Of a DNA stretch of 64,000 nucleotides, positions 26,246-55,210 are shown piece by piece. Each line of letters begins with the position of its first letter. Within the stretch, counting starts at the first letter, position 1. Source of the stretch: Dendrobates tinctorius (Eukaryota); contig NW_027361823.1 of the NCBI RefSeq assembly GCF_039654945.1, forward strand, positions 15,314,001 through 15,378,000, in the 5' to 3' direction. Below the pieces are notes generated by a model, which was not told where the DNA came from, ran no database searches, and saw only the letters and a program-made list of their open reading frames with translations. A program made the position numbers and the translations under genes.

Positions 26246-26392
26246 TCAATATACCACAAACTTGACTTTAAAAAAAACCAGCCTAGATAAATTTCTCACA
26301 ATTACACTTTCCCCTTTTGATACCTTCCTTTGGTTCAACAAACACGATAAAATGAAATCTGTTTCCAGTCGTCTTCCATAAGCATTCAACAC
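26246..26392 (-). CDS. Candidate alternative pcdh15 exon (26a-like, possible secreted-isoform terminal exon)
   Basis: Acceptor-like ttatatttgcagttcAG| is followed by a phase-0 frame VLNAYGRRLETDFILSCLLNQRKV...FVVY* (TGA ends 26246). It lies in unique non-repeat DNA downstream of the phase-0 donor at 59535. The match to mammalian exon 26a is from memory and unverified. Confidence 0.4.
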   Translation of the reverse strand: MLNAYGRRLETDFILSCLLNQRKVSKGESVIVRNLSRLVFFKVKFVVY

Positions 26393-27667
26393 CTGAACTG
26401 CAAATATAACAAGTGACTCACAAAACCCTTAAGGTTCAATCTGTCACAAAGATGTTTTAACTCAAATCAATAAAGGTCATTTAATGGCAGTCAATAGGCG
26501 AAAATAGCAAAAAGTCCTAAAAACTAAAAACTGTGATCACTGCAAGGCATTTCAAAAAAATCTTCCATAGCAAAATATAACTTTCTGAGCCTGAATTCCC
26601 TGGAGTTCTCTTATTTATTGATATCCTGTAGTTGCAGTCACCTTCCTCACCTTAATTTATTGCAGACCTGTAATATATAGGAGTTACTCTGTAATGTGTA
26701 CATAGTTAAGCATATTTTCATAAGCTGTAAATCCTCACTACCGTCAACTGTAATTTTCATTTGCAATTATCATTTCTATAGCTTTCAACTTTACAGGAAA
26801 CCCCCCTGGTCTTTTGATTATTTTCTACGATGTCTTACAATTTATTTAAGCACTAAGATTTATGTTTTATGCGGTTGTTTGATGTTGTATTATTCATATA
26901 AGCAAATAAGTTTTAGATTATTTAACGGCAGGAAAGTCTTTTTGAGATAACCAGAATGTAAAATGAATCGATTGTCATGCTGTGGCTATTCACATAAATG
27001 GACTAATAGATGATGTAGCTTGATAGCCGGCAAGCGCGAATACATTGTTGTCATCTATTTACCACTAAAATTACCCTGCTTGTGAGTTATTTTGGCTTTC
27101 ATTGATTTCAATCCATCTCTTCGATGTTATATTCAGTGGATATAGTATGAAAAAAGCTATGCCAAGGCCATGGGCACCAAACAAAACAGGTTGTTTCAGA
27201 GTCATTCCAGCTATCCTGCATCCAAGTGCTAGTGGGCTTTTGAGTGGACTGAGCATGTAAATAATATACCAAGTGAATTATAAAGTGAAATAGATGAATA
27301 TGGAGCAGTGCTGAATATATGATGAGGTTTTTATGATGAACTCACAGTGTTATCTAAAGTTAAAATTGACTGAGCAAACCTGGAATGATCAACATTTGGA
27401 CATTTAACACAATGTCACATCCATGTCTAAACCTAATTCTGTAACAACTGCCCTGGTGACTAGACAGTGCTGCAGTAACAGGACGGTCACTGCTTGACTC
27501 TGTCAGTGCGTGGGTGTTCATGTTTCAGATTGCTGAGACCAATTCACCCATTGCTTTCACTTGTGTTTTTCTGCATTGAGCTGGTAGGTAATTAGCTCTT
27601 TTGCTGGGAGCCATGGGCAGGCTCCCTTCTATATAATCTCCAACAGACAGTCTGTAGCTGTCAATTG

Positions 27668-30093: not shown

Positions 30094-33000
30094 TAGTGTT
30101 GAGCATTCTGATACAGCAATATCGGGTATCGGCCGATATTCGCGGTATCGGAGTTCCGATACTGAGTTCCGATACTTTTAGAATATCGAACACCGGAATC
30201 GGAGGTTTCCATAATGCAATTGCCAGTTTGATTTTATTCAGCCAATGAGGAATCCTAAGAAGTGTGGGCACATCCTGTTATGCATGTTAGGAATGTTAAC
30301 TAATGGCATGGCTGTGATTGGCTGCTGAAATGAAGTCATGATGAACTATAATAGCTGCCGCCGCCATTTTGGGTTCACTCTGCTGTGAATTTACTTAGGG
30401 ACAGGACGCTGCTGTTCTGAATCTGAGGGACAGTTTGAGCTAGCGATTTGCTTTATTGTGCTTTACCCAGGCTACTTTAGCAACTGCTGTGTGAGAAGCT
30501 TTCTTTTGCCTTGCAGCGCTGTTCACGGCTGTCTGCGAGGTCTCTGTGTGTGAGTGAAGCTCACGCTGTAGTGTGTTCTGCAGCTACCTCTGGTTGTAGT
30601 CCGCTCAGCGTGCGTCACTGCCTAATACATTGTCCTTTTTGCATTAGTGCTGCACATTTTTCCAGATTTCTCCTATTAGTGTGGTTCCATCCGTATCCAG
30701 CTAGAATATTTGCAAACACTATATTGGAGTAGATAGAGTAGCCTTTCTGCTGGCTTGTGCCCTGCAGCCCCAGCCAGATTAGTATTAGCCTATTTTTTGG
30801 AGCCTCATCTATGGCATTGCAGGTTGCCTTCCTGCATTGTAATAGCTACAAAAAGCTTGTGACACTATCGGTTTTACATCTTTGGGCACATCCAGTGTCT
30901 TTTTGTGAAAAAAAAAGTTAATAAAGTTCACCAAACAGTCCACTTTACATTTGTGTAGGCCACATTAGCTCTTATTAAAGTGTAGTCCACACACTTTATA
31001 AAATTAGTGTTTCTTATACCTGTTAGCAGCTGTTCAGGAATAAGCACACTAAGCCCTTAGTAATTTTCTTTATCAGTCTACCAAGATGAAGAAGGCAGGG
31101 AGTAAGGCACGTGGTCGTGGGCGTGGAGTTTCTGCAGGGAGAGGATGTGGGGAATCTGTGCCTGCTGCGGGCACCAGTGACTCAGCATCACCCAGTTTTA
31201 CCAGGGAACAGTCCTTTATGCACAGCTTTGTAGGAGATCGCCGTACCCCACTGCTGCAAGACAAACAAATTGAAGCTGTTGTCGGATGGATGGCAGCTAA
31301 CGCATCAACTTCAATTAGTTCCAGATCCTCTCAGGTCCAGAGCACTGAAGAGCACCCATCTGTCTCTTCACCACCTGCCAAATTGCCCAGGCAGTCAGAG
31401 AGCCCTGGACAGGAGCCATCTCTACTTCTGTTCTCTGAATCTGTTGGCTTGGAAAGAGGGGGCCAGCCAAGCAGCATTCGAGAATTTGAAGAAGAGGTAG
31501 TATGCTGTGATGCGCAGCAGCTTTGTCTCTCTGAATCTGAAGAGGCGAGTGGGCCAGTGCCTATGGTCACCACACCTCAGTACGCGTGTGATGATGAGAC
31601 TCAGATGCCACTTTCTGGTGCGTACTGTGCTGTAGAGACAGCCCAGGAGAAGCAGTCATTTGAAGAGGGTAATGTAGATGATGAGGTCCTTGACCCATCA
31701 TGGCGTGAGGTACAGGAAGGTGGTGGGAGCAGCTCTGAGGAAGAGATTCCCCAAATGGCCAAAAAAGGAGGGAGAGGGAGGGGGCAGACTCGGTTGCCTG
31801 TTGCCTACACTTCGGCACCCATTAGGAGCATGCCTCTTCCAAAACCCAAAACGGACCCTCCCAAGACTTGCAGTGCCCGGTCCTTTTTTGACACAGTTGC
31901 AGATGACATTTGCTTTGTCAAATGCAATCTGTGTAATCAGAAAGTCAAAAGAGGGAAAAGTGTCCATCCTTAATACCACAAAAATGTGGAAACATGTGCG
32001 GACCAAACACGTGGTGGAGTTACAAAGACACACTGAAGACCTAGGCCAACCTACAGCGCCACCTACCACCTCTTCAGCTCGTGTTGTAGCCTCTTCCTCC
32101 AGCTCACACACAGCTGGTTCAGCTTCCTCACAGGATCGCCATGGAAGAACCACCGGCACTGTTGTACAGAGACACAATGTCATTCCACCCACAGCACCAC
32201 ATTCCCTGTCATCCTCACACTCCCAGGCCAGTCTACAGCCATCGGTAGCACAGGCATGGGAGAAAAGGCACCCATACTCGGCAAACCACCCCCGAGCACA
32301 GGCTCTGAATGCTGGCATTGCAAAACTACTGTCCCTTGAAATGCTCTCGTTCAGGCTGGTGGAGACTGACACCTTCTGTAACTTCATGGCATTGGCAGTC
32401 CCACAATACAACATGCTCAGCAGCTTTTATTTCAGCAGGCAAGCCGCCCCTGCCCTGCAAAAGCATGTGGAGGGAAAAATTAAACATGCGCTACTAAACG
32501 CCGTCAGTAGCAAGGTCCACCTGACCACAGATGCGTGGACCAGTAACCATGGACAGGGACGATATCTTTCCCTCACTGCCCATTGGGTAAATGTTGTGGA
32601 GCCAGGTACAGGTCTTGAGAGTGGCGCTGTACGTGTTCTGCCAACTCCAAGGATTGCAGGAATCCAGTCTGTACACATTGACTCCTCCTCATACTCCAGT
32701 TCCTCTCAATCAGCGCTGCAGTAGCCGTCACAGTCTACCTCCACATGGACCCGTGAACTCTTACCTGTTACGACCGATATGAGCCCAGCCGTGGCCAAAC
32801 GTCAACAGGCCTTATTGAAATTAATTTCTTTAGGGAATCGAAGCCACAAAGCGCAGGAGCTCTGGAATGCCATCAAACAGGAGAGCGACGTGTGGTTTGT
32901 GCAAGCGAATCTCCAGCCAGGCAGGGTAGTGTGTGACAATGGCTGAAATCTGGTGGCAGCTCTGGGCCTAGGCAACCTCACTCACATCCCTTGTATGGCA

Positions 33001-34530
33001 CATGTGCTCAACTTGGTCGTGCAGAGTTTTTTGAGGGACTATCCGGATCTTGATGCACGGCTGCACAAGGTCCGCATAGAGTGTGCTCACTTGCGACGTT
33101 ACAGCATGGCAAGATCGCGCATTGCAGCTCTGCAGCGCCGATTCTGCCTTCCAGAACATCGCATCATATGTGACCTACCCACCAGGTGGAATTCAACGTT
33201 ACATATGTTGGAGAGGTTGTGTGAGCAGCAGGCAGCAGTAATGGAGTACCAGCTGCATCAGGCACAAACAAGTCGCACTGCACGCCGTTCACACTTCACC
33301 ACCACTGAGTGGGCCTCTATGAAGGACATCTGCCACGTTTTGCGTGCCTTCGATGATTCCACGCGGATGGTGAGTGCAGATTATGCACTAGTCAGCATGA
33401 CTATCCCCCTTATCTGCCTGCTTGAAAAAACACTGCAAGCACTAAAGGAGGAGGTTGTGGAAGAGGTGGAGGATGAGGAGTCACAAATGCCATCTGCTTC
33501 TGGATAGTCTGCGCAACGTGGTTCCTCACAAAGGCCTAGGCAAGGGACACTTTGTGAGGAGGATGAGGAGGAGTCAATGGAGGAGGAAGACATCTGTCCA
33601 GAGGCGGGAGGTACACAATGCTCTAGTAGTCAGTATGTAGAGCGAGGGTGGAGTGATGCAGAGCAGGCAGAGATGATGCCTCAAGCAGCGGACAGCATTT
33701 CCTGGCCAGTTGGCAATCTGCAGCACATGGTTGATTTCATGCAGCAGTGCCTGAGAAATGACCGCCACACCGCCCACATTCTCAACACGGCTGATTATTG
33801 GGTGTACACCCTCCTAGATCCTCTCTACCGAGACAACTTACAAAGCCTCATAACACCGTTGAACCGGGAGCTTAAAATGCGGGAGTACCAAGACACACTA
33901 GTGCGCTCCATCATGTTCTCCATTCCACCCGAGAGCAGTGCTGCTAGTGCTTTACAAAGCAGCTCAGTGCGTCGAGGCAGTGGAGGAAGCTCTGCACAGA
34001 GGGAGCAGAAGCAGCGCCTCAGCACAAGGCAAGACCAGTATGGCTCAAATATGGCAAAGTGTTGCGTCCCCGCCACAAATGTCTACACCATCACAGATGG
34101 CTCCAGTCAGCAGGAGGCAATGTTTCTGTCAGATGGTGACAGACTACTTGTCTTGCCCTCTCAGTGTTCTCCCACATGGCTCTTCCCCCTTCAAGTTTTG
34201 GGTCTCTAAGCTGGATACATGGCCAGAGCTTAGCCAGTATGCATTGGAGGTGCTGGTTTGCCCTGCTGCAAGTGTATTATCGGAACGTGTCTTTAGTGCC
34301 GCAGGTGGTGTACTAACAGACCGTCGCATGCGACTATCCTCCGATAATGTTGACCGGCTTACTTTTCTGAAAATGAACAAGGCCTGGATCTCGCAGGAAT
34401 TTGCCAGTCCTCTTCCAGATTAAATAATTGGTTGGCAACAGTATCCAGGCCTCCTGTTGTGCTCATGTTTCTACCACCTGAACTGCAATCCCTGGGCTCC
34501 AACACCACCAGTTGCTGCTCAGAAGTGCCG
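30094..34530 (+). mobile_element. hAT transposon family A (autonomous type), right end missing
   Basis: The left TIR TAGTGTTGAGCATTC and subterminal CCGATAC repeats match the non-autonomous elements. A transposase follows, and the sequence switches abruptly to satellite at ~34531. Confidence 0.9.
31086..34423 (+). pseudogene. BED-finger hAT transposase A, inactivated
   Basis: Motifs in order: MKKAGSKARGRGRG, BED finger (VKCNLC...MWKHVRTKH), LTTDAWT, CDNG, CMAH, PTRWNST, CPAASVLSERVFS. There are frameshifts near 31965 and 34005 and stops at 32722, 32944 and 33505. Confidence 0.93.
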
Positions 34531-37500
34531 TTATTTTACCAAGGGTATAAGGAGAAATTGAACTGGAAAAGTTATTGTGCAATTTGTCCTGAGTACGCTG
34601 ATACCTGATATGTGGGGGAACCACTTTTTCGGCGCATGGCAGAGCTCAGAAGGGAAGGAGCGCCGTTTGACTTTTTCAATGCAAAATTGGCTGGAATTCT
34701 GATCGGACGCCATGTCACGTTAGGAGAGCCCCTGATGTACCTAAACAGTGGAAACCTCCCATAAGTGACCCCATTTTGGAAACTAGACCCCCCAAGGAAC
34801 TTATCTAGATATGTGGTGAGAACTTTGAACCCACAAGGGCTTCACAGAAGTTTATAACGTACAGAGGTACAATTAAAAAATCATATTTTTTCCACAAAAA
34901 TGATCTTTTCACCCCCAATTTTTATTTTTCCAAAGGTAACAGGACCCTAAAAGCTATTGTGCAATTTGTCCAGAGTATGCTGATACCCCATATGTGGGTG
35001 TAAATGACTATTTGGGCGCATCGCAGAGCTCGGAAAGGAAGCAGCGCCATTTGACTTTTTTGGCAGGAATTGAGATCGGACACCATATTGTGTTTGGAAA
35101 GCCCCTGATGTACCAAAACAGTGGAAACCCCCTACAAATGACACAATTTTGGAAACTAGACCCCCAAGGAACTTATCCGATATGTGGTGAGAACTTTGAA
35201 CCCACAAGGGCTTCACAGAAGTTTATAACGTACAGCGGTACAATTAAAAAATCATATTTTTTCCACAAAAATGATCTTTTCACTCCCAATTTTTATTTTC
35301 CCAAGGGTAACAGGACACTAAAAGTTATTTTGCAATTTTTCCTGAGTATGCTGATACCCCATATGTGGGGGTAAACCACTATTTGGGCGCATGGCAGAGC
35401 TCGGAAGGGAAACAACACCATTTGACTTTTTTGGCTGGAATTGAGATCGGACACCATGTAGCGTTTGGAAAGCCCCTGATGTACCTAAACAGTGGAAACC
35501 CCCCACAAGTGACCCCATTTTGGAAACTAGACCCCCTAAGGAACTTATCTAGATGTGTGGGGAGCACTGTGAACTCCCCCAGTGCTTCACTGAAGTTTAT
35601 AACGCCCGGGCGTGAAAATAAAAAAATCGTATTTTTTCCACAAACATGATCATTTAGTACCCTTTTTTTATTTTCCCAAGGGTACCAGGAGAAAATGGAC
35701 TCCAAAAGTTGTTGTACAATTTGTCCTGAGTACAATGATACCCCATATGTGGGAGAAAACTACTGCATGGGCACACGACGGGTCTCGGAAGGGAAGTAGT
35801 GATGTTTTGGAATGCAGACTTTGATGGAATGGTCTGCGGGTGTCATGTTGCCTTTGGAGAGCCCCTGATGTACCTAAACAGTGGAAACCCCCCACAAATG
35901 ACACCATTTTGGAAACTAGACCCCCTAAGGAACTTATATAAATGTGTGGTGAGCACTTTGAACCCCCAAGGACTTCACAGAAGTTTATAACGCCCGGGCA
36001 TGAAAATAAAAAAATCATATTTTTTTTTTACCACAAAAATGATATTTTTGCCCCCAATTTTTTATTTTCCTAAGGGCAACAGGATAAATAGGACCCCAAA
36101 AGTTGTTTTGCAATTTGTCCTGAGTAGGCTGATACCCCATATGTGGGGTAAAACACTGTTTGGGCGCATGGCAGAGCTTGGAAGGGAGGAGCACCATTTG
36201 ACTTTTTCAACACAGAATTGGCTGGAATTGAGATCAGACGCCATGTTGCATTTGGAGAGCACCTGATATGCCCAAACAGTGGAAACCCCCCAATTATAAC
36301 TCCAACCCTAAACCCAACACATCCCTAACCCTAATCTCAGCCCTAACCCTAGCCCTAACCCTAACCCTAGCCCTAATGGGAAAATGGAAATAAATACATT
36401 TTTTTAATTTTATTATTTTTCCTTAACTAAGGGTGTGATGACGGGGGGTTTGATTTACTATTTATGGCGGTTTTTATTTTTGGCAGCTGTAACACGCTAA
36501 AAGACGCTTTTTATTGTAAAAATATTTTTTGCATAACCACATATTTAGAGCTATAATTTTTCCGTATTTTGACCCACTGAGTCTTGTGAGGTGTTATTTT
36601 TTGCGGGATGAGTTGACGTTTTTATTGGTATCATGTTTGGGCACGTGACATTTTTTGATCGCTTTTTATTCTGATTTTTGGGACGCAGAATGAGCAAAAA
36701 CCAGAGTTTCTGGAATTTCTTTTGGGGGGTGCGTTTATACCGTTCCGCCTGACGTAAAATTGATAAAGCGGTTTTATTCTTCGGGTCAGTACGGTTACAG
36801 CGATACCTCATTTATGTCATTTTTTATGTTTTGGTGCTTTTATGCAATGAAAACAATTTTATATAAAAAATAATAATTTTTGCATCACTTTATTCTGTGA
36901 GCTATAACTTTTATATTTTTTCTCTGATAATGCTGTGTAGTGGCTCGTTTTTTGTGGGACAAGATGACGTTTTCAGCAGTACCATGGATATTTATATGCG
37001 TCTTTTTGATCACGCGTTATTGCACTTTTTTTCGGCGGTATGATAATAAATCATTATTTTTTGCTTCGTTTTTTATTTTTATTTTTTAAGGGGTTTGCTA
37101 AAGGTGTTAACTAATGGGACTGCTTTATAGGGCAGGTCATTTCGGACGTGGCAATACCAAATATGTGTACTTTTATTGTTTTGTTTTTTTATTTCCAAAA
37201 AATGAATTTATTAGGGAATTTTTTTTTTTTTTTAATTTATTTAGCGATTTTTAAAAAATTATTTTTACACCTTTTTTTTAACTTTATTAGGTTGTCCCAG
37301 GGGGGACATCACTGTCCTGTGACAGATCGCGGATCTGTCACATCACAGATCACTGTGACAGATCAGCAATCTGTCACAGGCAGTGCACAAGGCTTCCTCA
37401 TGCCTGTGCTTTGCATGCACTTAGGAAGCCAGCTCCCTGCAGGCCCCCGAAGGTCCCTGTCGCCATCTTGGATCCAGGGACCTGCAGGGAAAGAGCCCCC

Positions 37501-37734: not shown

Positions 37735-38550
37735 TAAACATCTCATATGCATTAAATGAGCAATAATTAATGTGGCTAAACTCAGAAAGGCAAACTCTTT
37801 CTTTTAAGTAAAGGCTTTGTTAGCTCTTGTAATTTTTTTCATAGATACCACTTATTTTGATTGAAAATATCATGTCTCCAGTAGGCTGATATCAGTGGGA
37901 AAAAAAAGATCTGTGTAACATTGCTACTTGAACCTTCTCAAGCAATCTCGGCTTTTGTCACTAGGCACCCGTACTCACTATTAGAGTTGAGCGAAACAGG
38001 TCGAAAAATTTCAAAAGTCGCTGACTTTTGTCAAAGTCGGGTTTCATGAAACGAAACCCGACCCTAGAATGAGGTCGGCCACGAGGTCGGCGACTTACGC
38101 GCCAAAGTCGCGTTTCAAAAGTTTGTTTTGCGCTCTTTTACAGCCAATCAGGATCCACGGACACTGTGGGCAACGTGATGACATAGGCAGGGGTCACCAC
38201 CATCTTTCAGAAGGGTATGCAAGTGATTGGCTTGCTTTGGTGGGCGTCACAGGGGGTATAAAAGGGCGTGCACGCCGACCGCCATCTTACTTCTGCCGAT
38301 ATCAGTATAGGGAGAGGTTGCTGCTGATTCTGTAGGGAGAGCGTTAGGCAGGGAAGAAGACAAAAAAACTGCTTCTGCTGCTAGCGATTTGGCCTGCACA
38401 ACACACAAGTCACTGTGTGTGAAGTGCAAGGGGAGGATATATTGTGGTGTATCAGTGGTGTTGGTTGTTGGGCTGCCTTTTAAGGCTTCCTGACAGGCTG
38501 GCATTGCTGTTTACCCACTGCTCCGCAAACTGCTTTTTTAAAAGCAATCC

Positions 38551-40120
38551 AATCTCCCTTATCCTGTAGTCACTTTGGTCACAGCTGTGCCATCGAGCCT
38601 GTCACATAGCGCTCAGATATTCATTGGGCCTCACACAATCCACAAGTGTCCAGTGTCCAAAAGTGTGTGCAGAGATTCAAAATCTCCCTTATCCTCTCGT
38701 CACTTTGGTCACAGCTGTGCCATCGAGCCTGTCACATAGCGCTCAGATATTCATTGGGCCTCACACAATCCACAAGTGTCCAGTGTCCAAAAGTGTGTGC
38801 AGAGATTCAAAATCTCCCTTATCCTCTCGTCACTTTGGTCACAGCTGTGCCATCAAGCCTGTCACATAGCGCTCAGATATTCATTGGGCCTCACACAATC
38901 CACAAGTGTCCAGTGTCCAAAAGTGTGCGCAGAGATTCAAAATCTCCCTTATCCTCTCGTCACTTTGGTCACAGCTGTGCCATCGAGCCTGTCACATAGC
39001 GCTCAGATATTCATTGGGCCTCACACAATCCACAAGTGTCCAGTGTCCAAAAGTGTGCGCAGAGATTCAAAATCTCCCTTATCCTCTCGTCACTTTGGTC
39101 ACAGCTGTGCCATCGAGCCTATCACATAGTGCTCAGATATTCATTGGGCCTCACACAATCCACAAGTGTCCAGTGTCCAAAAGTGTGCGCAGAGATTCAA
39201 AATCTCCCTTATCCTCTCGTCACTTTGGTCACAGCTGTGCCATCGAGCCTGTCACATAGCGCTCAGATATTCATTGGGCCTCACACAATCCACAAGTGTC
39301 CAGTGTCCAAAAGTGTGTGCAGAGATTCAAAATCTCCCTTATCCTTTCGTCACTTTGGTCACAGCTGTGCCATCGAGCCTGTCACATAGCGCTCAGATAT
39401 TCATTGGGCCTCACACAATCCACAAGTGTCCAGTGTCCAAAAGTGTGTGCAGAGATTCAAAATCTCCCTTATCCTCTCGTCACTTTGGTCACAGCTGTGC
39501 CATCGAGCCTGTCACATAGCGCTCAGATATTCATTGGGCCTCACACAATCCACAAGTGTCCAGTGTCCAAAAGTGTGCGCAGAGATTCAAAATCTCCCTT
39601 ATCCTCTCGTCACTTTGGTCACAGCTGTGCCATCGAGCCTGTCACATAGCGCTCAGATATTCATTGGGCCTCACACAATCCACAAGTGTCCAGTGTCGAA
39701 AAGTGTGCGCAGAGATTCAAAATCTCCCTTATCCTCTCGTCACTTTGGTCACAGCTGTGCCATCGAGCCTGTCACATAGCGCTCAGATATTCAATGGGCC
39801 TCACACAATCCACAAGTGTCCAGTGTCCAAAAGTGTGTGCAGAGATTCAAAATCTCCCTTATCCTTTCGTCACTTTGGTCACAGCTGTGCCATCGAGCCT
39901 GTCACATAGCGCTCAGATATTCATTGGACCTCACACAATCCACAAGTGTCCAGTGTCCAAAAGTGTGTGCAGAGATTCAAAATCTCCCTTATCCTCTCGT
40001 CACTTTGGTCACAGCTGTGCCATCGAGCCTGTCACATAGCGCTCAGATATTCATTGGGCCTCACACAATCCAAAAGTGTCCAGTGTCCACAAGTGTCTGC
40101 AGAAATTCAAAATCTCCCCT
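38551..40120. repeat. 130-bp tandem array, 12 near-identical copies, upstream of transposase B
   Basis: The unit AATCTCCCTTATCC...AGAGATTCAA recurs every 130 bp from 38551 to 39981, with a partial copy at 40111. Confidence 0.97.
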
Positions 40121-40194
40121 GTCCTATAGACACCTTGTACCTTGTTTTACATTACTATATAGTTTGTTGGATTTTGTCTACATTTCTACCAAAA

Positions 40195-43100
40195 ATGAGG
40201 AAGGCTGGTGGAAGAGGCCGTGGAATTGGCTGGGGTTGGCAGCTGGTAATGATGGTGTTGGTGGTGGATCTGATGGTAGTGGCAAGAGCAAAATAGGACC
40301 GAATGCAGGAGGTGTTGAGCCTGCGTCATCGTCTGGCTACATAAGGCCTCGAACGCTTAGTTTTCTAGGAGTTGGCAAACCGCTTTTAAAGCCAGAGCAT
40401 CAGGAAAAAGTTTTGTCTTACATTGCTGACTCAGCCTCCAGCTCTATCGCCTCCTCTTCTTCAGTTGTAAAAAGTAAAAGCACTGAGTCGTCATTGGAGG
40501 CTCATGTTCATGAACCACAAATTTCCTTGTGTCCTTCACCCCAACCAAGATTGAAGGATGACGCAGGCCATACTACTGATTACTCCATGGAGCTGTTTTC
40601 ACATACCATGCCTGGATTATCAAGTCAAATGGTGAATTACCCAGGCCAAGATGAATCTGACATGGAGTGCACTGATGCACAGCCGCTGATGGATGATTCT
40701 GCTGGTACATTCACTCAGGGCACTACATTGTCCTCGCAGTGTACAGAGCCAGATTCTGACCCTGATGAGACTCAGGTGCCCCTTCCCGCACACTATACCA
40801 CCATACACGGTGACACAGAGGAAGGTGCACATGACATAGAAGAGGAGGTGATGGATGACCCAGTTGTTGACCCAGATTGGCATCCATTGGGGGAAGAGGG
40901 TGCTGCTTCCAATAGCTCAGATGAGGAGCATCCACAGCAGACATCGACATCGCAACAGCTGTTATCTGGCAGGCCCGTAGCACTCCAAAGACAGGTTCCA
41001 AACATCAAAAGAGTTGCTGGACAGCTTGTCCAGAGGGTCAAAAGATCACAGCGTGCTAGGCCGCAAAATGTCTGCCAAAGTAGGAAGAGTGCAGTGTGGC
41101 ACTTTTTTGAACAAAATCCTCATGATCAGGCCAAGGTTATCTGTAAGAAGTGCGCAAAGACCTTTAGCCGAGGGAAAAATCTGAAAAATTTGAATACCAG
41201 TTGCATGCTTAGACATTTAACCAGCATGCACTTGCAAGCGTGGACACAACACCAAACCTCAAGTGCCACATGTGCAACTGATCACAACGAAGGTAGTCAG
41301 CAACGCTACATTGTTTCCCCCACTGTAAGCCCACCGGTTAGCACAGCAGCAAATGTTGAGGTGTCGTTGCAAGGCCACAGCAGTCAGGGAATCCAACTGT
41401 TATATCAACGAAAGACTGATTCTAGGCCATCAGAAAGAACACCAACTCCATCACCATCATCAACCCTCTCTCAGTCCGCCCTGTCCACCGCTACTTCCAC
41501 CATATGCAGCTCTCAAGTCCAGCTCACCCTCCCAGACACTATGAGTAGGTCAAGAAAGTACTCAGTCTCTCATCCGCGTACATTGGGTTTGAACGCCCAC
41601 ATTGCTAAACTAATCTCGTTTGAGATGATGCCCTTTCGGTTGGTGGAAAGCGCAGCTTTCCGCGAACTCATGGCCTATGCAGTACCACGCTATGACCTAC
41701 CCAGTTGCCACTTCTTCTCTCGCAAAGCCATCCCAGCCCTACACCATCATGTGAAAGACCGCATTGTCCATGCACTCAAGCAGTCAGTGAGCGGAAAGGT
41801 GCACCTCACAACTGATGCATGGTCCAGTCGGCATGGCCAGGGCCGTTACGTGTCCATCACTGCGCACTGGGTTAATGTGGTGGATGCAGGGTCCACAGGG
41901 GACAGTGGTGGTGGGACAGTGCTGCCTAGCCCACGGTATAGGAAACAGTTGGCTGTAGGCGTTCGACCCTCCTCCTCCTCCAGAAGCGAAAGCTCGTCCT
42001 CAGAGCACAGTCGTACGAGCACTCCATCTGCAGCTGCCACTGTTGCACACGATGTGTCCCCCTATCGAGCAGCTAGTGGAAAGCGTCAGCAGGCTGTGTT
42101 GCAGATGATGTGTTTGGGCAACAGACACACCGCCGAGGTGCTGGCCGAGTACTTGAAGCGACAAACTGAGTCATGGCTGGGCAGTGTACATCTTGAGGCA
42201 GGCAAGGTAGTTAGTGATAACGGCCGTAATTTTGTGGCAGCCATAGCCCGTTCGTATGCAGAAGCTGCAGCGATTGCTCCACCTTCCCAACCACCGCCTT
42301 ATTATCGACATTGCAACAAGGTGGAACTCCACCCTGCACATGGTGGAGCGGCTGTGCGAGCAGAGGCAGGTCATAATGCATTTGTGGGAGGATACACGGC
42401 CAGGCACTTTGAGAGCAGACATGGAGTTGACAGGTGTGCAGTGGTCGAAGCTGAAAGACCTCTGTAAAGTCCTTCAGTGTTTTGAGGAATGCACACGGCT
42501 GGTAAGCGCAGACGACGCCATCCTAAGCATGAGCATCCCACTTATGCGTCTGCTCATGCAAACTTTGACGCACCTTAAGGAGCAGGCGTCTGCAGCCAAT
42601 GTTGATGAGGAGGAAGAGGAGGAGGGAATCCTTGATGACATTCAGCCATTGTCTGCTCAGGGACCTCTCCTGGACGAGGTGGAGGAAGAAGAGGAGGAGG
42701 AGGATGATGATGGGGATGATTACTTAGGGGAGGAGGATGCATCTCGTGGGGCAAGTGAAAATGTTGGCGTGGCAAGGTCTGGTACAGGGTTTGTGCGTGA
42801 CTGGAGGGATGTGGATTTGCCAGAAAGTGCTCCTCCACCCAGCACTCGCAGTGCATCATTGACACCGGGAACATTGGCCCACATGTCAGATTATGCCTTG
42901 CAGATCCTAAAAAGGGACCCCCGCATTGCCAAAATGATGAACGATGACGACTACTGGTTGGCCAGCATCCTGGTTCCACGCTATAAAGGCAAATTACAAA
43001 ACATCATGCCACAGGAGAACCTTTACCTAATATTGGCTAATAAACAAGCAACTCTGGTACATCGGTTGCTTGAGGCATTCCCAGCACACAGCAGCGGTGA

Positions 43101-43581
43101 TGGTTCTCACACGAGCCGTACGGGCCGGGGGCAGCTTGGCAGAGGTGTTCGTGGTGCACACAGCAGAAGTGGCGTTGGAGACAGGGGTTTCATGAGAATG
43201 TTGTGGACTGGTTTTTCAAATACCGCTCACACAACTGGTAATACTGCATCGATGGAAAGTGACAGGAGACAGCAGTTGTCAACTATGATAACAAACTACT
43301 TTTCCTCCCATATCGATGTTCTCCCACACAGGTCATTCCCCTTTGACTATTGGGCCGCTAAACTGGACACCTGGCCTGAATTGGCCCAATATGCCTTACA
43401 GGAGCTCGCTTGCCCAGCTGCAAGTGTGCTATCGGAAAGAGTCTTCAGTGCAGCTGGATCAATCCTGACAGAAAAAAGGACCCGTCTGTCAACCCAAAAT
43501 GTGGATGATCTAACCTTCATTAAAATGAACCATGCATGGGTTTCCAAGGATTTTGTCCCACCTTCCCCTGATGACACATAG
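40195..43581 (+). pseudogene. BED-finger hAT transposase B, inactivated
   Basis: ATG 40195 gives MRKAGGRGRG, with a frameshift near 40230. It contains the BED finger (VWHFF...ICKKC...LRHLTSMH), LTTDAWS, SDNG, ATRWNST and CPAASVLSERVFS. A frameshifting deletion near 42250 removes the CxxH segment present in transposase A. Confidence 0.94.
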
Positions 43582-44000
43582 GGTGACAGAAAAATGGCTT
43601 GCTTTGGTCCACCTCTTCCTGGGACTTCACCTATTTCGCCTTTTGCATCAGCTGAATGTCCAACATCAACATATGCCACTTTCTAAAACTCCCTAACTGT
43701 GCTGCCTCCCCCCCCATGGCTGGGGTCACCACCTAGCGAACGACACCGTGCAAGTGCCGTTGCCCTGGACAGGTGGGTAGGCTGACTCTTGGGCGCGGGC
43801 ACTGGCACAGGGTCCCTCATAGTGCAATCAAGTGTCTCTGACGGTGGTGGTGCACACCCACCGTCAGACACACCGCTGTACTATGAGGGGCCCAGTGCCA
43901 GTACCGACGCCCACGAATGGGCCCCCCTTGCTTGGGCAGGGCCCCAGCATTTGCAATCTTTACCTCTCCCTGCTCCTCCGCTGTGTAATCTGGGCCGTCA

Positions 44001-44392
44001 AATCCATACTGTGCCTGACACCGTCTGAGCCTGCCTCCTGAGACATATATTTTGAATGTGTACGCTATCCATACATGTTATCCGGGGAAACGGTACCCTT
44101 TCTAACCTTTGTGCATTCACGTGCAATCCATACTGGGCCTAACACCGTCTGAGCCTGCCTCCTGAGACATATATTTTGAATGTGTACGCTATCCATACAT
44201 GTTATCTGGGGATACGGTACCCTTTCTAACCTTTGTGCAATCACGTGCAATCCATACTGGGCCTAACACCGTCTGAGCCTGCCTCCTGATGTATAGACAT
44301 ATATTTTGAATGTGTACGCTATCCATACATGTTATCTGGGGATACGGTACCCTTTCTCACCTTTGTGCAATCACGTGTAATCCATACTGGGC
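44001..44392. repeat. 124-bp tandem repeat, 3 copies, in the hAT B 3' region
   Basis: AATCCATACT recurs at 44001, 44125, 44249 and 44379; the last unit has a 6-bp insertion. Confidence 0.92.
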
Positions 44393-44501
44393 GTGAGAAC
44401 GGCTGGCGAGCTGTTAAGCAAGCTACAGCACCTGTGGTTTGCACACGTAAGTTTTTAATTTTTTCAGGAATGACGGTTAGGCCTAATTCCGGAACTGCAG
44501 T

Positions 44502-44978
44502 TGACCTGCACTTACTGGGAAATCATCGTTCGCGGGTAATAATTGTAATCAGTGATCCCCATCACTAACGTTGTTCAGCGGGTTATCTGCACCCGTAAGC
44601 GACAAACGCTGGCCTTTTCAGTGTAGCGCACATGCAGCCACGGACATTTAAGGGCATGACACACCAGTTATTGGCCAATCTCATGTGCCAGAGCCTCACG
44701 TGTCCCTCTAGTAAGCCGGACTCGGACCGCGGGGCATGACGGAGTCTCGTTCGTTAACGGAATTAAGCTTGCAATGTGTGCATCTGTTCTGTAGCTGTCA
44801 TGGTTGAGGTTTCCCAGGTGGAGTCGAATTTAACCGTAGGCTCCACTCCTGGTGGTGCCCTTCTGGACATTCCTTTAAGGTTCAGCTTTGCAACCATACT
44901 GCCCACGTAAAACAAACACTTTGCCTTCATGAACGCTGTTTGGAGGGTCATGACTCGTGGGAATAACGCCGCCCAATC
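44502..44978 (-). pseudogene. Degenerate 18S (SSU) rRNA fragment inside hAT B
   Basis: The plus strand has collinear blocks matching reverse-complemented vertebrate 18S: CACTTACTGGGAA, GATCCCCATCAC, TCAGTGTAGCGC, CGGACATtTAAGGGCAT, TGTCCCTCTA, GAGTCTCGTTCGTTA, GGCTCCACTCCTGGTGGTGCCCTTC, TTCCTTTAAG, TTCAGCTTTGCAACCATACT, TGGGAATAACGCCGCC. Confidence 0.92.
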
Positions 44979-47900
44979 AGTTAACCTGCTAGAGAGATCC
45001 TTCGTTGCTCCCAAGCATGACATCACACTCCCTAGGAAGAAGGTAATGCCACTGTGGCGACCGTACTCCTGGGGGCGACACAAGTGCACTGATGCCCAGC
45101 CACTGCTCGATGAATCTGCTGGGACATTGACCCAGACCACTACATTCCCCTCGCATGCTACACGACCTGAATCTGACCCTGATGAAACTCAGGTTACCCT
45201 TCCCATATACAGTTCCATCTTACACGGTGACAAAGAGGAAGCTGCAGATGAAAGTGCAGGTTCGGCCACCCGCCATCAGACACACCACCGTACTATCATG
45301 GGCCCTGTGCCAGTGCCGTCGCCAACGAGTGGGCCCCCCCTGCTTGCCCAGGATCACAGCACTTGCAAAGTTGAAATACTGTGCAGTGAGATGGAAGATG
45401 GGGACGACGAGGAATCCAGAGAAGTACAGGGATTCCCTAGCGAGGAGACTTATTTGATTGTTTTCAATGTTGGGACAGCAATTTTTGGGGAGTACTATAC
45501 TCTGGAGAATGATAGATGGGGCCCACCATACACTGGAACATTCCAACGGTGGACATCAGACACTGGTGCAGCATTTACAGGGCCCATTATACACTAGAGC
45601 ATTAGAAATGGGGCCCATTATGTTTGGAGCATTATTTGGGCCCATAAGACAGTGGAGCTTCATCCATGGGGACCAACATATACTGTAGCATTATGTGGAG
45701 CTCATCATATACTGTTTCAAAAACATTATATGGGACCAATGATTCTGTATGGAGAAATAGATGGGCCTCGTCATGAGATGTAAAAAGTGAGGTATTTTTC
45801 ATTGTACTATACCGCTATTTCTCTGCCGTATCGGAGCATGATGAGTTGTGGTATGTGTTAAAGGGGCGCTCTTTCGCCCAGGGCACATGAAAACCTGCAG
45901 CCAGCCCTCCCCCCCACAACTTTAGCCAAATAACCCCCATTTTTCAGTGCGTAACTTGTATTATGAAGTTAATTAAGGTTGACAAGCTTAAGTAAGAAGA
46001 ATTGATGCTTTTGACATTCAAATGGGCACTGTAGGTGTGTTTCCTGTCCTCCTCTCACTGCCGACTTTTATTCCCCATTGACTTACATTGGGTTTCGTGT
46101 TTCGGGACGACCCCGATTTTTCCCTATAATCGGACGATCTTGCTCGACCTGACTTTTAGAAAAGTCGGGTTTCACGAAACGAAACGCGACCCTAAAAAAC
46201 CAAAAGTCGCTCAACTCTACTCACTATGCTCCGAAGACAGCATTGGTGATGGAGGAGTTGTCATAGCAAGTATCTACGGGCAGCACATATGATATCAAGA
46301 GAGGGATGACACTGTGGCTGGAACTTGTTGGCAAAATTAGTGTGTTTGCTGTACAGCAGCTCATCAAGAGTAACTGTATTTGCTGGCATGCTTGTGATCA
46401 CAATCAGTTTTGGCCAAGTTTTAATTTTTGAATAGAATGCCTCACATTTGACTGTAAAATATTTTGGTGCATGGGAGGAGTTCATGTTTGACTCCATGAC
46501 TGCAAAGGTACACAAATCTTTTGGCTGCAAACAAACTCAAATCATCACCCCTTTGATTTTCACCAAACACGGTGTTAGGGTTGTGGATCGCACTAAATAT
46601 AAAATATAAGTAAGTGCGATCGCAACCCATGGTCCACCATGCATAGATGGTAAACTGCTGCTCGGTAATGGCGGAGTACTAACTGGACACCGGCAGGTTA
46701 ACCACTGACCCGGTGTGCACAGGACTGAACTCTGTTACCTCACAGAGCCGATGGAACAAATGCCAGAGTCTGTTTATCTTTACAGGAGTTGGCAGGGGAG
46801 CGCTAGTGTAGAGACACAGGACTCTGCCCCAAGGACACAGGGTTAGAGTCCCTCTAGCCCCACTAGCTTTCAGCACCGTGACTGCAGTGCCTTGACAGAT
46901 GCTTAACCCCTTCCTGACATCCGACGTACTATCCCGTCCACGGTACCCGGGCCCGTATGACCGTGGACGGGATAGTACGTCTACCGCTATCAGCGGCGCC
47001 CACGTGGTGAGCGCCGCTGATCGTGGCCGGGTGTCAGCTGATTATCACAGCTGACACCCGGCACTATGTGTCAGGGGCGGTCACGGACCGCCCCCGACAC
47101 GTTAACCCCTTGCACACCGCGATCAAACATGATCGCGGTGTACCGGGAGTTAAAGGGAAGCATCGGCAGGGAGGGGGCTCCCTCCGTGCTTCCCTGAGCC
47201 CCCCACGGCAGCGCTGCTGCGGGGGGCTCCTATCCTCCAGGCCCCCGAATCCAAGATGGCGACGGGGGCCTTCGGGGACCTGAGGAAGCTGGCTTCCTCA
47301 GTGCCTGCAAAGCGCAGGCAAGAGGAAGTCTGCTTCAATGCCTGTGACAGATTGCTGATCTGTCACAGTGATCTGTGATGTGACAGATCAGCGATCTGTC
47401 ACAGGACAGTGATGTCCCACCTGGGACTATGTAATAAAGTAAAAAAAAAATAAAAAAAAAATGTAAAAATAAATTTAAAAAAATCGCCAAATAAATTAGT
47501 AAAAAAAAAAAAAAATATTCCCCAATAAATTCATTTTTTGAAAATAATAAAAAAAAAACCCAATAAAAGTACACATATTAGGTATCGCCGCGTCCGTAAT
47601 GACCCGCCCTATAAAACTGTCCCATTAGTTAACCCTTTTAGCGAACCCCTTAAAAAATAAAAATAAAAAACGAAGCAAAAAATAATGATTTATTATCATA
47701 CCGCCAAACAAAAAGTGTAATAACGCGCGATCAAAAAGACACATATAAATATCCATGGTACCACTGAAAACGTCATCTTGTCCCGCAAAAAACGAGCCAC
47801 CACACAGCATCATCAGCGAAAAAATAAAAAAGTTATAGCTCACAGAATAAAGCGATGCAAAAATAATTATTTTTTATATAAAATAGTTTTCATTGCAGAA

Positions 47901-48849: not shown

Positions 48850-51800
48850 TGGGGGTTTCCACTGTTTGGGCACATCAGGGGCTCTCCAAATGCAACATGG
48901 CGTCTGATCTCAATTCCAGCCAATTCTGAGTTGAAAAAGTCAAATGGTGCTCCTTCCCTTCCAAGCTCTGCCATGCGCCCAAACAGTGTTTTACCCCCAC
49001 ATGTAGGGTATCAGCCTACTCAGGACAAATTGCAAAACAATTTTTGGGGTCCAATTTCTCCTGTTACCCTTAGGAAAATAAAAAATTGGGGGCAAAAATA
49101 TCATTTTTGTGGAAAAAAATTATTTTTTTATTTTCACGTCCGAGTGTTATAAACTTCTGTGAAGCACTTGGGGGTTCAAAGTGCTCATCACACATCTAGA
49201 TAAGTTCCGTGGGGGGTCTAGTGTCCAAAATGGGGTCACTTGTGGGGAGTTTCAATAGTTTAGGTACATCAGGGGCTCTCCAAACGCACATGACACCCGC
49301 AGACCATTCCATCAAAGTCTGCATTCCAAAACGTCACTGCTTCCCTTCCGAGCCCCGACGTGTGTCCATACAGTAGTTTTCTCCCACATATGGGGTGTCA
49401 GCGTACTCAGGCCAAATTGGACAACAACTTTTGGGGTCCAATTTCTCCTGTTACCCTTGGGAAAATGAAAAAATTGCGGACTAATTGATCATGTTTCTGG
49501 AAAAAATACGATTTTTTTATTTTCATGCCCTGGCATTATAAACTTCTGTGAAGACCTTGGGGGTTCAAAGTGCTCACCTCACATCTAGATAAGTTCCTTA
49601 GTGGGTCTAGTTTTCAAAATGGGGTCATTTGTGGGGGGGTTTCCACTGTTTAGGTACATTAGGGGCTCTCCAAAGGCAACATGACACCCGCAGACCATTC
49701 CATCAAAGTCTGCATACCAAAACGTCACTACTTCCCTTCCGAGCCCCGACGTGTGCCCATACAGTAGTTTTCACCCACATATGGGGTATCAGCATACTCA
49801 GGACAAATTGGACAACAACTTTTGGGGTTCAATTTCTCCTGGTACCCTTGGGAAAATAAAAAAATGGTGACTAAAAGATCATGTTTGTGGAAAAAATACG
49901 AATTTTTTATTTTCTCGCCCGAGCGTTATAAACTTCTGTGAAGCACTGGGGGGGTCAAAGTGCTCACCACACATCTAGATAAGTTCCTTTGGGGGTCTAG
50001 TTTACAAAATGGTGTCATTTGTGGGGGGTTTCCACTGTTTAGGTACATTAGGGGCTCTCCAAAGGCAACATGACACCCGCAGACCATTCCATCAAAGTCT
50101 GCATTCCAAAACGTCACTACTTCCCTTCCGAGCCCCGACGTGTGCCCATACAGTAGTTTTCTCCCACATATGGGGTATCAGCATACTCAGGACAAATTAG
50201 ACAACAACTTTTGGGGTCCAATTTCTCCTGGTACCCTTGGGAAAATAAAAAAATGGTGACTAAAAGATCATGTTTGTGGAAAAAATACGAATTATTTATT
50301 TTCACGCCCGGGCATTATAAACTTCTGTGAAGCACTGGGGGGGTCAAAGTGCTCACCACACATCTAGATAAGTTCCTTAGGGGGTCTAGTTTCCAAAATG
50401 GTGTCATTTGTGGGGGGTTTCCACTGTTTTGGTACATCAGGAGTTTTCCAAACGCGACATGGTGTCCGATCTCAATTCCAGCCAAAAACGTCAAATGGCG
50501 CTGCTTCCCTTCCGAGCTCTGCCATGCGCCCAAATAGTGGTTTACCCCCACATGTGGGGTATCAGCGTACTCAGAACAAATTGCACAATAACTTTTACGG
50601 TCTTGTTACCCTTGGAAAAATAAGAATTGAGGGTGAAAAGATCATTTTTGTGGAAAAAATATGATTTTTTAACTGTATGGCTTTATGTTATAAATAGTGT
50701 TGAGCATTCCGATACCGCAAGTATCGGGTATCGGCCGATACTTGCTGTATCGGAATTCTGATACCGACTTCCGATATTTTTTCAATATCGGAATTCGGCA
50801 TCGGAATCGTAAGTTCAAAGTTGATTGACAGACTGACGTCATCATGATGCGCGATGTGTGCGCATCATGATGCGCCGTCATTTCGGGCCTGCCGGGGGGC
50901 TGTGTGGACTGCCCGGGGTCTGTACCGGCCTGCCGGGGGGCTGTGCCGGCCTGCCGGTGGTCTGTGCACCCTGTGGGGGTCTGTACCGGCCTGCCGGGGG
51001 GCTGTGCCGGCCTGCCGGTGGTCTGTGCACCCTGTGGGGGTCTGTACCGGCCTGCCGGGGGGCTGTGCCGGCCTGCCGGTGGTCTGTGCACCCTGTGGGG
51101 GTCTGTACCGGCCTGCCGGGGGGCTGTGCCGGCCTGCCGGGGGGCTGTGCTGATGTCCGGGGGTCTGTGCAAGCATCGTCCGATGGGACTACAAGTCCCA
51201 TCGGGCGATGCCTGCTACCATGACAGTGATTGACACATTAGCCAATGATGGGACAGTAGTAGTCCCATCATCCGGCTAATGTGTTAAATGTTAAAAAAAA
51301 AAAAAAAAAAAAATACTACATGCATACTACATACATACTACATGCTACATACATACTACATATATATTACATACATACTACATACATGCTACATACATAC
51401 TGAATGCTACATACATACTACATACATACTACATACATACTACATGCATGCTACATACATACTACATGCATGCTACATACATACTACATGCATGCTACAT
51501 GCATGCTACATACATACTACATGCATGCTACATACATACTACATACTACATACATACCACATACATAATACATACATACTACATACTACATATATACTAC
51601 ATGCATGCTACATACATACTACATGCTACATACATACCACATACATACTACATACATGCTACATACTACATACATACTACATGCATGCTACATACATACT
51701 ACATACATACTACATGCATGCTACATACATACTACATGCATGCTACATACATACTACATGCTACATACATACCACATACATACTACATGCTACATACATA

Positions 51801-54800
51801 CTACATATATACTACATGCATGCTACATACATACTACATGCTACATACATACCACATACATACTACATACATGCTACATACATACTACATATATACTACA
51901 TGCATGCTACATACATACTACATGCTACATACATACCACATACATACTACATGCATGCTACATACATACTACATATATACTACATGCATGCTACATACAT
52001 ACTGCATGCTACATACATACTACATACATACTACATGCTACATACATACCACATATATACTACATACATACAATACATTCATACAATACATACATAGACA
52101 TACAGTACATATAACATAGAGTAACATACTTACCAATACTTGTCACATTGTTCCCCGAAGCCATTGTCTTTTCCGGAATAAATATTAACATAACAAACCA
52201 CAAAAATACTCACCCACGATCCGAAGCAGTCCACGAGTGTGTCCCACGACGATCTTGGGTAGAGAACTGCAGCATCAGATGATGCTGCCGTTCTCTATGG
52301 GCTGCAGGAATCCAATGACGGAAGGTAGGTATCCTTCCGCACTGTATTCCTCCGCCACTTAAAAAAAAAAAAGTCCCTATTCTCACTTTATGCCATTGCT
52401 GCGTGGGAAATTCCCACACAGCAATGGCATAAAGTGAGACTAGGGACTTTTTTTTTTTTTAAGTGGCGGAGGAATACAGTGCGGAAGGATACCTACCTTC
52501 CGTCATTGGATTCCTGCAGCCCGTAGAGAACGGCAGCATCAGCTGATGCTGCCGTTCTCTACCCAAGATCGTCGTGGGACACACTCTTGGACTGCTTCGG
52601 ATCGTGGGTGAGTATTTTTGTGGTTTGTTATGTTAATATTTATTCCGGAAAAGACAATGGCTTCGGGGAACAATGTGACAAGTATTGGTAAGTATGTTAC
52701 TCTATGTTATATGTACTGTATGTCTATGTATGTATTGTATGAATGTATTGTATGTAGTATGTATGTAGTATATATGTGGTATGTATGTAGCATGTAGTAT
52801 GTATGTAGTATGTATGTAGCATGCAGTATGTATGTAGCATGCATGTAGTATGTATGTAGCATGCATGTAGTATATATGTAGTATGTATGTAGCATGCATG
52901 TAGTATGTATGTGGTATGTATGTAGCATGTAGTATGTATGTAGCATGCATGTAGTATATATGTGTTATGTATGTAGCATGTAGCATGCATGTAGCATGCA
53001 TGTAGTATGTATGTAGTATGTATGTAGTATATATGTGGTATGTATGTTGCATGTAGTATTTATGTATGTAGCATGTAGTATGTATGTAGCATGCAGTATG
53101 TATGTAGCATGCATGTAGTATATATGTAGTATGTATGTAGTATATATGTAGTATGTATGTTGCATGTAGTATTTATGTAGTATGAATGTAGCATGTATGT
53201 AGTATGTAGTATGAATGTAGCATGTATGTAGTATGCATGTTGTATGTATGTAGCATGTAATTTTTTTTTTTTTTTTTACATTTAACACATTAGCCGGATG
53301 ATGGGACTACTACTGTCCCATCATTGGCTAATGTGTCAATCACTGTCATGGTAGCAGGCATCGCCCGATGGGACTTGTAGTCCCATCGGACGATGCCTGC
53401 ACAGACCCCCGAAGCCTGCACAGCCCCCCGGCAGGCCGGCACAGCCCCCCGGCAGGCCGGCACAGCCCCCCGGAGCCTGCACAGACCACCGGCAGGCCGG
53501 CACAGCCCCCCGGCAGGCCGGCACAGCCCCCCGGAGCCTGCACAGCCCCCCGGCAGGCCGGCACAGCCCACCGGAGCCTGCACAGCCCCCCGGCAGGCCG
53601 GCACAGCCCCCCGGCAGGCCGGCACAGACCACCGGAGCCTGCACAGACCCCCTGGCAGGCCGGCACAGCCCCCCGAAAGGCCCGTACAGACCCCAGAGAG
53701 GCTGTACAAGGGCAGGAAAGGGTTTTTCTTATTCCGATACCGGAAGTCCCATAGACTTGAATGGGACTTCCGGTATCAGAATCGGCGATACCGATACTTT
53801 TTTTAAAGATCGGCCGATACCAGCCGATACGATACTTTGAAGTATCGGACGGTATCGCTCAACTCTAGTTATAAACTTCTGTGAAGCCCATGGGGGTTCA
53901 AAGTTCTCACCACACATCTAGATAAGTTCCTTAGGGGGTCTAGTTTCCAAAATGGTGTCATTTGTGGGGGATTTCCACTGTTTTGGTACATCAGGGGTTT
54001 TCCAAATGCGACATGGTGTCCGATCTCAATTCCAGCCAAAAACGTCAAATGGCGCTGCTTCCCTTCCGAGCTCTGCCATGCGCCCAAATAGTGGTTTACC
54101 CCCACATGTGGGGTATCAGCGTACTCAGGACAAATTGCACAATAACTTTTAGGGTCCTGTTACCCTTGGAAAAATAAGAATTGAGGGTGAAAACATCATT
54201 TTTGTGGAAAAAATATGATTTTTTAATTGTATGGCTGTATGTTATAAACTTCTGTGAAGCCCATGGGGGTTCAAAGTTCTCACCACACATGTAGATAAGT
54301 TCCTTAGGGGGTCTAGTTTCCAAAATGGTGTCATTTGTGGGGGATTTCCACTGTTTTGGTACATCAGGGGTTTTCCAAACGCGACATGGTGTCCGATCTC
54401 AATTCCAGCCAAAAACGTCAAATGGCATTGCTTCCCTTCCGAGCTCTGCCATGCGCCCAAATAGTGGTTTACCCCCACATGTGGGGTATCAGCGTACTCA
54501 GGACAAATTGCACAATAACTTTTAGGGTCCTGTTACCCTTGGAAAAATAAGAATTGAGGGTGAAAAGATCATTTTTGTGGAAAAAATATGATTTTTTAAT
54601 TGTATGGCTGTATGTTATAAACTTCTGTGAAGCCCATGGGGGTTCAAAGTTCTCACCACACATCTAGATAAGTTCCTTAGGGGGTCTAGTTTCCAAAATG
54701 GTGTCATTTGTGGGGGGTTTCCACTGTTTTGGTACATCAGGGGTTTTCCAAACGCGACATGGTGTCCGATCTCAATTCCAGCCAAAAACGTCAAATGGCA

Positions 54801-55210
54801 TTGCTTCCCTTCCGAGCTCTGCCATGCGCCCAAATAGTGGTTTACCCCCACATGTGGGGTATCAGCGTACTCAGGACAAATTGCACAATAACTTTTAGGG
54901 TCCTGTTACCCTTGGGAAAATAAAAATTGGGGTGAAAATATCATTTTTGTGGAAAAAATATGATTTTTTAATTGTACCGCTGTACGTTATAAACTTCTGT
55001 AAAGCCTTTGTGGGTTCAAAGTTCTCACCACATATCTAGATAAGTTCCTTGGGGGGTCTAGTTTCCAAAATGGGGTCACTTGTAGGGGGTTTCCACTGTT
55101 TAGGTACATCAGGGACTCTCCAAACGTGACATGGCGTCCGATCTGAATTCCAGCCAATTTTGTATTGAAAAAGTCAAACGGCGCTCCTTCCATTCTGAGC
55201 TCTGCCATGC
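48850..55210. repeat. Internal satellite of the piggyBac-like element (~373/~409-bp units), split by the hAT insertion
   Basis: TTATAAACTTCTGTGAAG recurs, for example near 49537, 49926, 50316, 53869, 54242 and 54615; the last intervals are 373 bp. Confidence 0.9.
50695..53867. mobile_element. Non-autonomous hAT element (copy 2, full palindromic foldback), opposite orientation to copy 1
   Basis: TIRs TAGTGTTGAGC / GCTCAACTCTA with perfect 8-bp TSD GTTATAAA (50687-50694, 53868-53875). The interior is mirror-symmetric about ~52410. Confidence 0.95.

Follow-up and report, generated by a model that had tools for sequence, protein, structure and literature searches.

A non-autonomous hAT element of Ds2-like build with a 2.8-kb, 1-base-spacer internal palindrome in Dendrobates tinctorius

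The Ds2-type elements of the maize Ac/Ds system have hAT ends of about 200 bp with an 11-bp terminal inverted repeat (TIR), short subterminal binding repeats and a target-site duplication (TSD) of 8 bp; these ends enclose unrelated filler, and the elements are mobilised in trans (PMC3260210). Here we describe an element of similar build, which would be moved in the same manner, from the genome of the dyeing poison frog Dendrobates tinctorius. It occupies positions 50695-53867 (3,173 bp) of a 64,000-nucleotide stretch of DNA (assembly GCF_039654945.1, contig NW_027361823.1, positions 15,314,001 to 15,378,000 of the forward strand), which we refer to as the window, and it carries 11-bp TIRs and a perfect 8-bp TSD, GTTATAAA. 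Unlike in Ds2, the filler is a 2.8-kb palindrome of satellite modules with a 1-base spacer, the host is a vertebrate, and the subterminal motif is CCGATA/TATCGG instead of AAACGG. The element is inserted precisely in a 373-bp repeat unit and has no coding capacity, and a transposase-bearing relative with a shared 5′ end lies in the same window. We consider it highly probable that this copy as a whole is a real, precisely inserted, non-autonomous hAT of Ds2-like build, filled with a palindrome of four modules per arm.

Three other kinds of mobile element invite comparison. Foldback-type elements (Drosophila FB, Galileo, FARE and Muta1) likewise have long inverted arms of tandem repeats, little or no coding sequence and the potential to snap back, but their termini are themselves long inverted repeats, and the superfamilies concerned are MULE and P (PMC5499845). 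The initial annotation had proposed a Foldback-like architecture on hAT termini. The hAT termini were recovered, as was a near-spacerless palindrome moved as a unit; the palindrome, however, proved to be internal cargo between dissimilar ends. Because it spans 50886-53699 and stops short of the termini, and because the hallmarks are those of hAT instead of MULE or P, strict Foldback identity was rejected. The 191 and 168 bp outside the palindrome have only the TIR and the subterminal motifs in common, and their alignment was no better than that of shuffled sequences (z about 1.5). The nearest hAT precedent is the internal inverted repeats of Tol2, a vertebrate element in which they are unrelated to the termini and have been termed unique among hAT members; those arms are 302 and 303 bp long, derive from an inserted Angel miniature inverted-repeat transposable element and sit in an autonomous element (bioRxiv 10.64898/2026.01.12.699174), whereas the arms described here are about 1.4 kb, rich in satellite, separated by nearly no spacer and part of a non-autonomous element. 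Double Ds is also a hAT with a large internal inverted duplication, but it consists of one Ds reversed inside another and so has internal termini (mentioned in PMC3260210). A nested origin of this type was rejected for the frog element, as no TIR match was found within 50706-53856.

The 5′ TIR, TAGTGTTGAGC, lies at 50695-50705 and the 3′ TIR, the reverse complement of TAGAGTTGAGC, at 53857-53867; TAGTGTTGAGC and TAGAGTTGAGC are complementary at 10/11 positions, in keeping with the short TIRs of hAT elements (about 11 bp, beginning with YAG). Within the window the TIR pattern occurs at element ends only. Directly outside are the two unstranded copies of GTTATAAA, 8 bp at 50687-50694 on the left and 53868-53875 on the right. 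The host DNA, a 373-bp tandem repeat, runs on to either side of the element, and in-silico excision of the element with one TSD copy yielded 300 bp that aligned, ungapped, at 97.3-97.7% identity to two neighbouring 373-bp units. These units provide empty paralogous target sites, at 54230-54261 (plus strand) in the next unit and at 54603-54634, where the target is again uninterrupted. Since excision restores the 373-bp unit without a gap, the TSD is not a chance match and the whole 3.2 kb came in as one piece. The boundaries given in the initial annotation are thus exact, as judged by the TIR positions and the flanking TSD, and the perfect 8-bp TSD that it reported is present on both sides.

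Between its hAT ends the element is a palindrome of 2,814 bp (50886-53699) whose only spacer is the unpaired base 52410. The hAT 5′ end outside it (50695-50885, 191 bp, plus strand) holds the TIR, seven CCGATA/TATCGG motifs and, at about 50836-50880, a small hairpin. The left arm then begins with a GC-rich minisatellite (50886-51170, plus strand) with a 21-bp unit and, at the higher order, 3.9 copies of a 61-bp unit at 98%. It is followed, still on the plus strand, by a hairpin block (51171-51295) with two ATGGGAC-N-GTCCCAT hairpins and an A-run (together 51171-51312), by a TACATAC-type array of 792 bp with period 11 and a higher-order period of 51 (51313-52104), and by a unique arm (52105-52360). 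The unstranded palindrome centre (52361-52459) consists of an A-run, 36-bp stems and a T-run, with the sequence GTGGGAA-A-TTCCCAC at 52403-52417. From there the modules recur on the minus strand: the right unique arm (52460-52709), which mirrors 52105-52360 at 98.5-98.6% identity; the right TACATAC-type array (52710-53259, 550 bp); a T-run and the right hairpin block (53260-53394, the block itself at about 53275-53394), which mirror 51171-51312 at 99%; and the right GC-rich minisatellite (53395-53699), here the C-rich strand. The hAT 3′ end (53700-53867, 168 bp, plus strand) contains the TIR together with five subterminal motifs and a single GTCCCAT-N-ATGGGAC hairpin. This mapping bears out the module order of the initial annotation (minisatellite, hairpin block, array, unique arm, centre, then the same mirrored), with two corrections: the array, present in both arms as claimed, has an 11-mer unit with a 51-bp higher order and is not built of a TACATG hexamer, and the unique arm measures about 256 bp (about 305 bp up to the centre), not about 330 bp. 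Each unique arm also contains a perfect sub-palindrome of its own of 34-40 bp (GAGAAC...GTTCTC, at 52260-52297 and 52523-52562). The motif ATGGGAC-N(5-7)-GTCCCAT occurs five times in the window, where none is expected, always in hairpin blocks of the palindrome family (51183-51268, 53301-53386 and 6707-6727).

The two arms are nearly the same in sequence. Counted in ungapped blocks, 9/681 positions of the non-satellite modules differ (about 98.7% alike). The unique arms are identical at 292 of 296 positions, the two halves of the centre at 47 of 49 and the hairpin blocks at 134 of 136; for the inner part of the array the count is 199/200. The arrays as a whole differ in length by 242 bp (792 vs 550 bp), and near-identical unique arms with satellites of unequal length are what had been noted at the outset. 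The GC minisatellites are only about 90-94% identical, with mismatches that recur with the 61-bp higher-order unit, and these differences reflect local amplification. The 61-bp unit (x3.9 at 98%, at 50915-51150) is a variant missing from the right arm and from the second family copy described below; its amplification, in the left arm of this copy alone, is recent and local.

Assignment to hAT draws on several features. Perfect 8-bp TSDs flank the element (GTTATAAA), its sister copy (CTCTTAAC) and a related hAT (CTCACTAT), and in this small sample of three sites the second base is T and the seventh A throughout, which fits the hAT target preference nTnnnnAn. Clusters of CCGATA/TATCGG, presumed to be transposase-binding sites, lie at both ends of the family elements with five to eight motifs per end; of the 44 occurrences across the 64-kb window, 33 fall within about 960 bp of element ends. 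A degraded, 3′-truncated relative of autonomous type (30094-34423, plus strand) shares the TIR and the CCGATA/TATCGG motifs and is 84% identical to the 5′ end of the palindromic element over the first 111 bp (the shared stretch being about 110-125 bp). Its last open reading frame (ORF; 33938-34423) encodes a hAT dimerisation domain (Pfam Dimer_Tnp_hAT, E 1.1e-15), which aligned with the C terminus of the Hermes transposase in a search of the PDB (E 6e-9). The 3′ end of this relative was searched for across the window and was not found. This copy tells which family is the parent; it does not show an active source. With the TSDs, the 11-bp TIRs, the motif clusters and the dimerisation domain of the relative, the non-autonomous hAT identity given in the initial annotation is upheld. 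A comparison of the palindrome modules with the relative gave no match, and the internal ORFs of the palindromic element, all within repeats, gave only sub-threshold, repeat-on-repeat matches to Pfam, consistent with its lack of coding capacity. A known RNA family in the arms was also rejected, as the Rfam matches, made by the perfect hairpin, were sub-threshold and limited to generic hairpin or miRNA-precursor models. The related hAT mentioned above (37982-46219, about 8.2 kb, TSD CTCACTAT) has the TIR TAGAGTTGAGC at both ends, other subterminal motifs and no CCGATA/TATCGG; inside it are tandem arrays at 38551-40125 (130 bp x12, 98%) and 44001-44392 (124 bp x3).

The window contains a sister copy with one arm (4851-7227, minus strand, 2,377 bp, perfect TSD CTCTTAAC). 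Its modules are of the same kind and in the same order as in the two-armed element: the hAT ends are both present, as are the two GC minisatellites in inverted orientation and one complete arm (hairpin block, 1-kb array and unique arm), while the second arm is reduced to a stub of about 50 bp that makes a short central hairpin. The sole junction without a counterpart in the two-armed form runs from minisatellite through GAGAAC to stub, and its linker (5297-5306, plus strand) is the 10-mer TGTGGAGAAC. In inverted orientation this 10-mer matches the retained arm exactly, at 5498-5507, about 190 bp away (p about 7.5e-5 for shuffled 10-mers), and it looks like a repair scar, perhaps left by microhomology joins or templated fill-in. 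Long palindromes are stabilised by asymmetric rearrangements such as deletions, and with moderate confidence, judging from the junction sequence, we think that the sister copy arose from a two-armed ancestor by asymmetric deletion. The second deletion boundary sits at the foot of the GAGAAC...GTTCTC sub-hairpin.

Comparison of the two copies indicates that similarity goes with the copy. In the unique segment the arms of the two-armed element are 98.5% identical to each other, yet against the sister arm either one reaches only about 88%. Likewise, 63-69% of the k-mers of the right array are present in the left array, as opposed to 10-31% for the sister array. Over the central 50 bp or so, where all four arm sequences are present, two of three informative sites group by copy and one, a CpG site, groups by side. 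The hairpin block is better conserved between the copies than the unique arm (96% vs 88%), which hints that it may be a constrained cis element; an exact-pattern scan of metagenome and viral contigs for its conserved motif gave no match. The stub in the sister copy implies that the palindrome is older than the split of the two copies, and, if so, the arms have been homogenised within each lineage. The likeness of the arms thus points to arm homogenisation or to repeated fold-back resynthesis as its probable source. The arms of sex-chromosome palindromes are also far more alike than their age predicts (PMC8327919), but those palindromes measure from 10 kb to megabases, have kilobase-scale spacers, carry genes and are immobile, and conversion in the frog element is only inferred, from two copies.

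In the mechanism that we favour, the transposase of the autonomous family would cut and paste the element in trans, and the palindrome would be an inherited family trait that passes through transposition, not a local accident. The arms would be held alike within each copy by conversion (for example, mismatch correction in an extruded hairpin) or by fold-back resynthesis during gap repair, and the palindrome would decay through asymmetric deletion, with the sister copy at 4851-7227 as a possible example. A more specific proposal is that the first arm serves to rebuild or correct the second whenever the element is single-stranded, for instance in gap repair after hAT excision or at a small central hairpin. 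We regard this proposal as unlikely; if true, it would explain why a vertebrate genome can contain many palindromes with a 1-base spacer and 1.4-kb arms, and why these stay near-perfect over a period that sees copies diverge by about 12%, and one-armed copies would be the templates or the decay products of the regeneration cycle. Several points weigh against the favoured mechanism. The GC minisatellites are no more alike within a copy than between copies. Of the junction 10-mer, four bases also belong to the minisatellite unit, and the 6-mer that is left has, by itself, a p of about 0.1, so the direction from two-armed to one-armed is favoured, not proven. The relative at 30094 is split into several frames by frameshifts and is without its 3′ end, and is thus no intact transposase source. 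The family-wide architecture is judged from the two copies examined, and the palindrome was read from the assembled sequence.

The same observations can be read in the opposite direction, with the one-armed form as the ancestral, transposing design, made up of a central hairpin of about 50 bp and inverted GC minisatellites at both ends. Two-armed copies would then arise by fold-back template switching, in which synthesis would reverse at the small hairpin, run back along the arm as its template and reconnect within the inverted GC minisatellite, perhaps independently for each two-armed copy, and the likeness of the arms would reflect youth, not gene conversion. The one-armed copy indeed holds both inverted homologies just where the two switches would be needed, the arms of the two-armed copy have diverged by about 1.3% vs about 12% between copies, and the GC minisatellites, where a switch back would be expected, are the least similar part of the arms. 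However, a perfect 50-bp hairpin flanked by inverted minisatellites is also the expected remnant of a deletion in a full palindrome, and the 10-mer beside the stub is an inverted match to the interior of the arm, as would be expected of a repair scar after the loss of a longer arm. On balance we find this ancestry rather unlikely. Far less probable still is an artefact of assembly or of fold-back reads as the source of the inverted duplication, in which case the true locus would be one-armed. Long-read libraries are known to fail at long palindromes, but the palindrome here does not extend to a contig or read end, and beyond it the sequence joins a proper hAT 3′ end unlike the 5′ end, then a perfect TSD and the satellite unit as it carries on. 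In addition, the arms differ by nine substitutions, by homopolymer lengths, by 242 bp of array and by minisatellite higher-order units, and the sister copy retains a stub of the second arm. Because the arms differ and because a different hAT end, the TSD and the host repeat are rejoined, an artefact is very unlikely. The published genome of the dyeing poison frog was assembled with HiFi reads of over 10 kb, which are long enough to span such an element; hAT elements make up 3.91% of the assembly, and palindromes or foldbacks are not mentioned (PMC11152451). The precisely inserted, two-armed hAT element is the preferred reading.

Compatible with that reading is the idea that the copy acts on its host, either by feeding a long hairpin RNA into small interfering RNA (siRNA) or ADAR pathways or as a cruciform-prone fragile site in a host gene. 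The central 1,299 nt are predicted to fold as a single near-perfect stem, about 630 bp long (-1094 kcal/mol), and long double-stranded RNA from the palindrome, if it is transcribed, is physically plausible on the basis of this model. Of the words sampled from the stretch, 31-38% occur in two runs guessed to be RNA (possibly DNA), a weak indication that applies at the level of the family. On the other hand, the copy has lasted, unrearranged, long enough for about 1.3% arm divergence, and its arms share nothing with the transposase-bearing relative. A hairpin that silences the parent transposase in the manner of Mu killer was rejected for this last reason: with arms that contain no sequence of the element at 30094, it could not silence the parent element. 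The initial annotation had placed the insertion in the pre-mRNA of pcdh15. Among the 150 longest stop-free segments outside repeats, Pfam recognised no cadherin-type (pcdh15) exon, short exons not having been screened, and no long open frame was present at 26246-26500. No host-gene exon of any kind was recognised among the 150 longest stop-free segments outside the listed elements, in which all Pfam domains were transposon-derived (reverse transcriptase, parts of Sleeping-Beauty/Tc1 transposase, chromo domain and L1-type endonuclease). We consider an effect on the host distinctly improbable.

The 373-bp repeat that received the element belongs to a satellite family whose period is about 371-389 bp and which forms three arrays in the window (34567-36292, 48953-50596 and 53868-55157) in both orientations. 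One of these arrays follows directly after the truncated, transposase-bearing hAT, and another is the insertion target described above. The array behind the truncated hAT ends with a short telomere-like run of CCCTAA/CCCTAG (36330-36380).

In vertebrate cells, long perfect palindromes are considered unstable. The Ds2-like hAT carrying a giant internal palindrome is real, and it is unusual for hAT. What is newly added at this locus is the one-armed sister copy, the proof from empty sites and the candidate transposase-bearing partner; the remainder is confirmatory. Palindromic hAT insertions in transcribed regions could give rise to long double-stranded RNA. A hAT family that moves with a near-spacerless palindrome of 2.8 kb, its arms alike, constitutes a natural system with replicate loci in a large amphibian genome, of use for studying the tolerance of palindromes, the homogenisation of their arms and their decay by asymmetric deletion.

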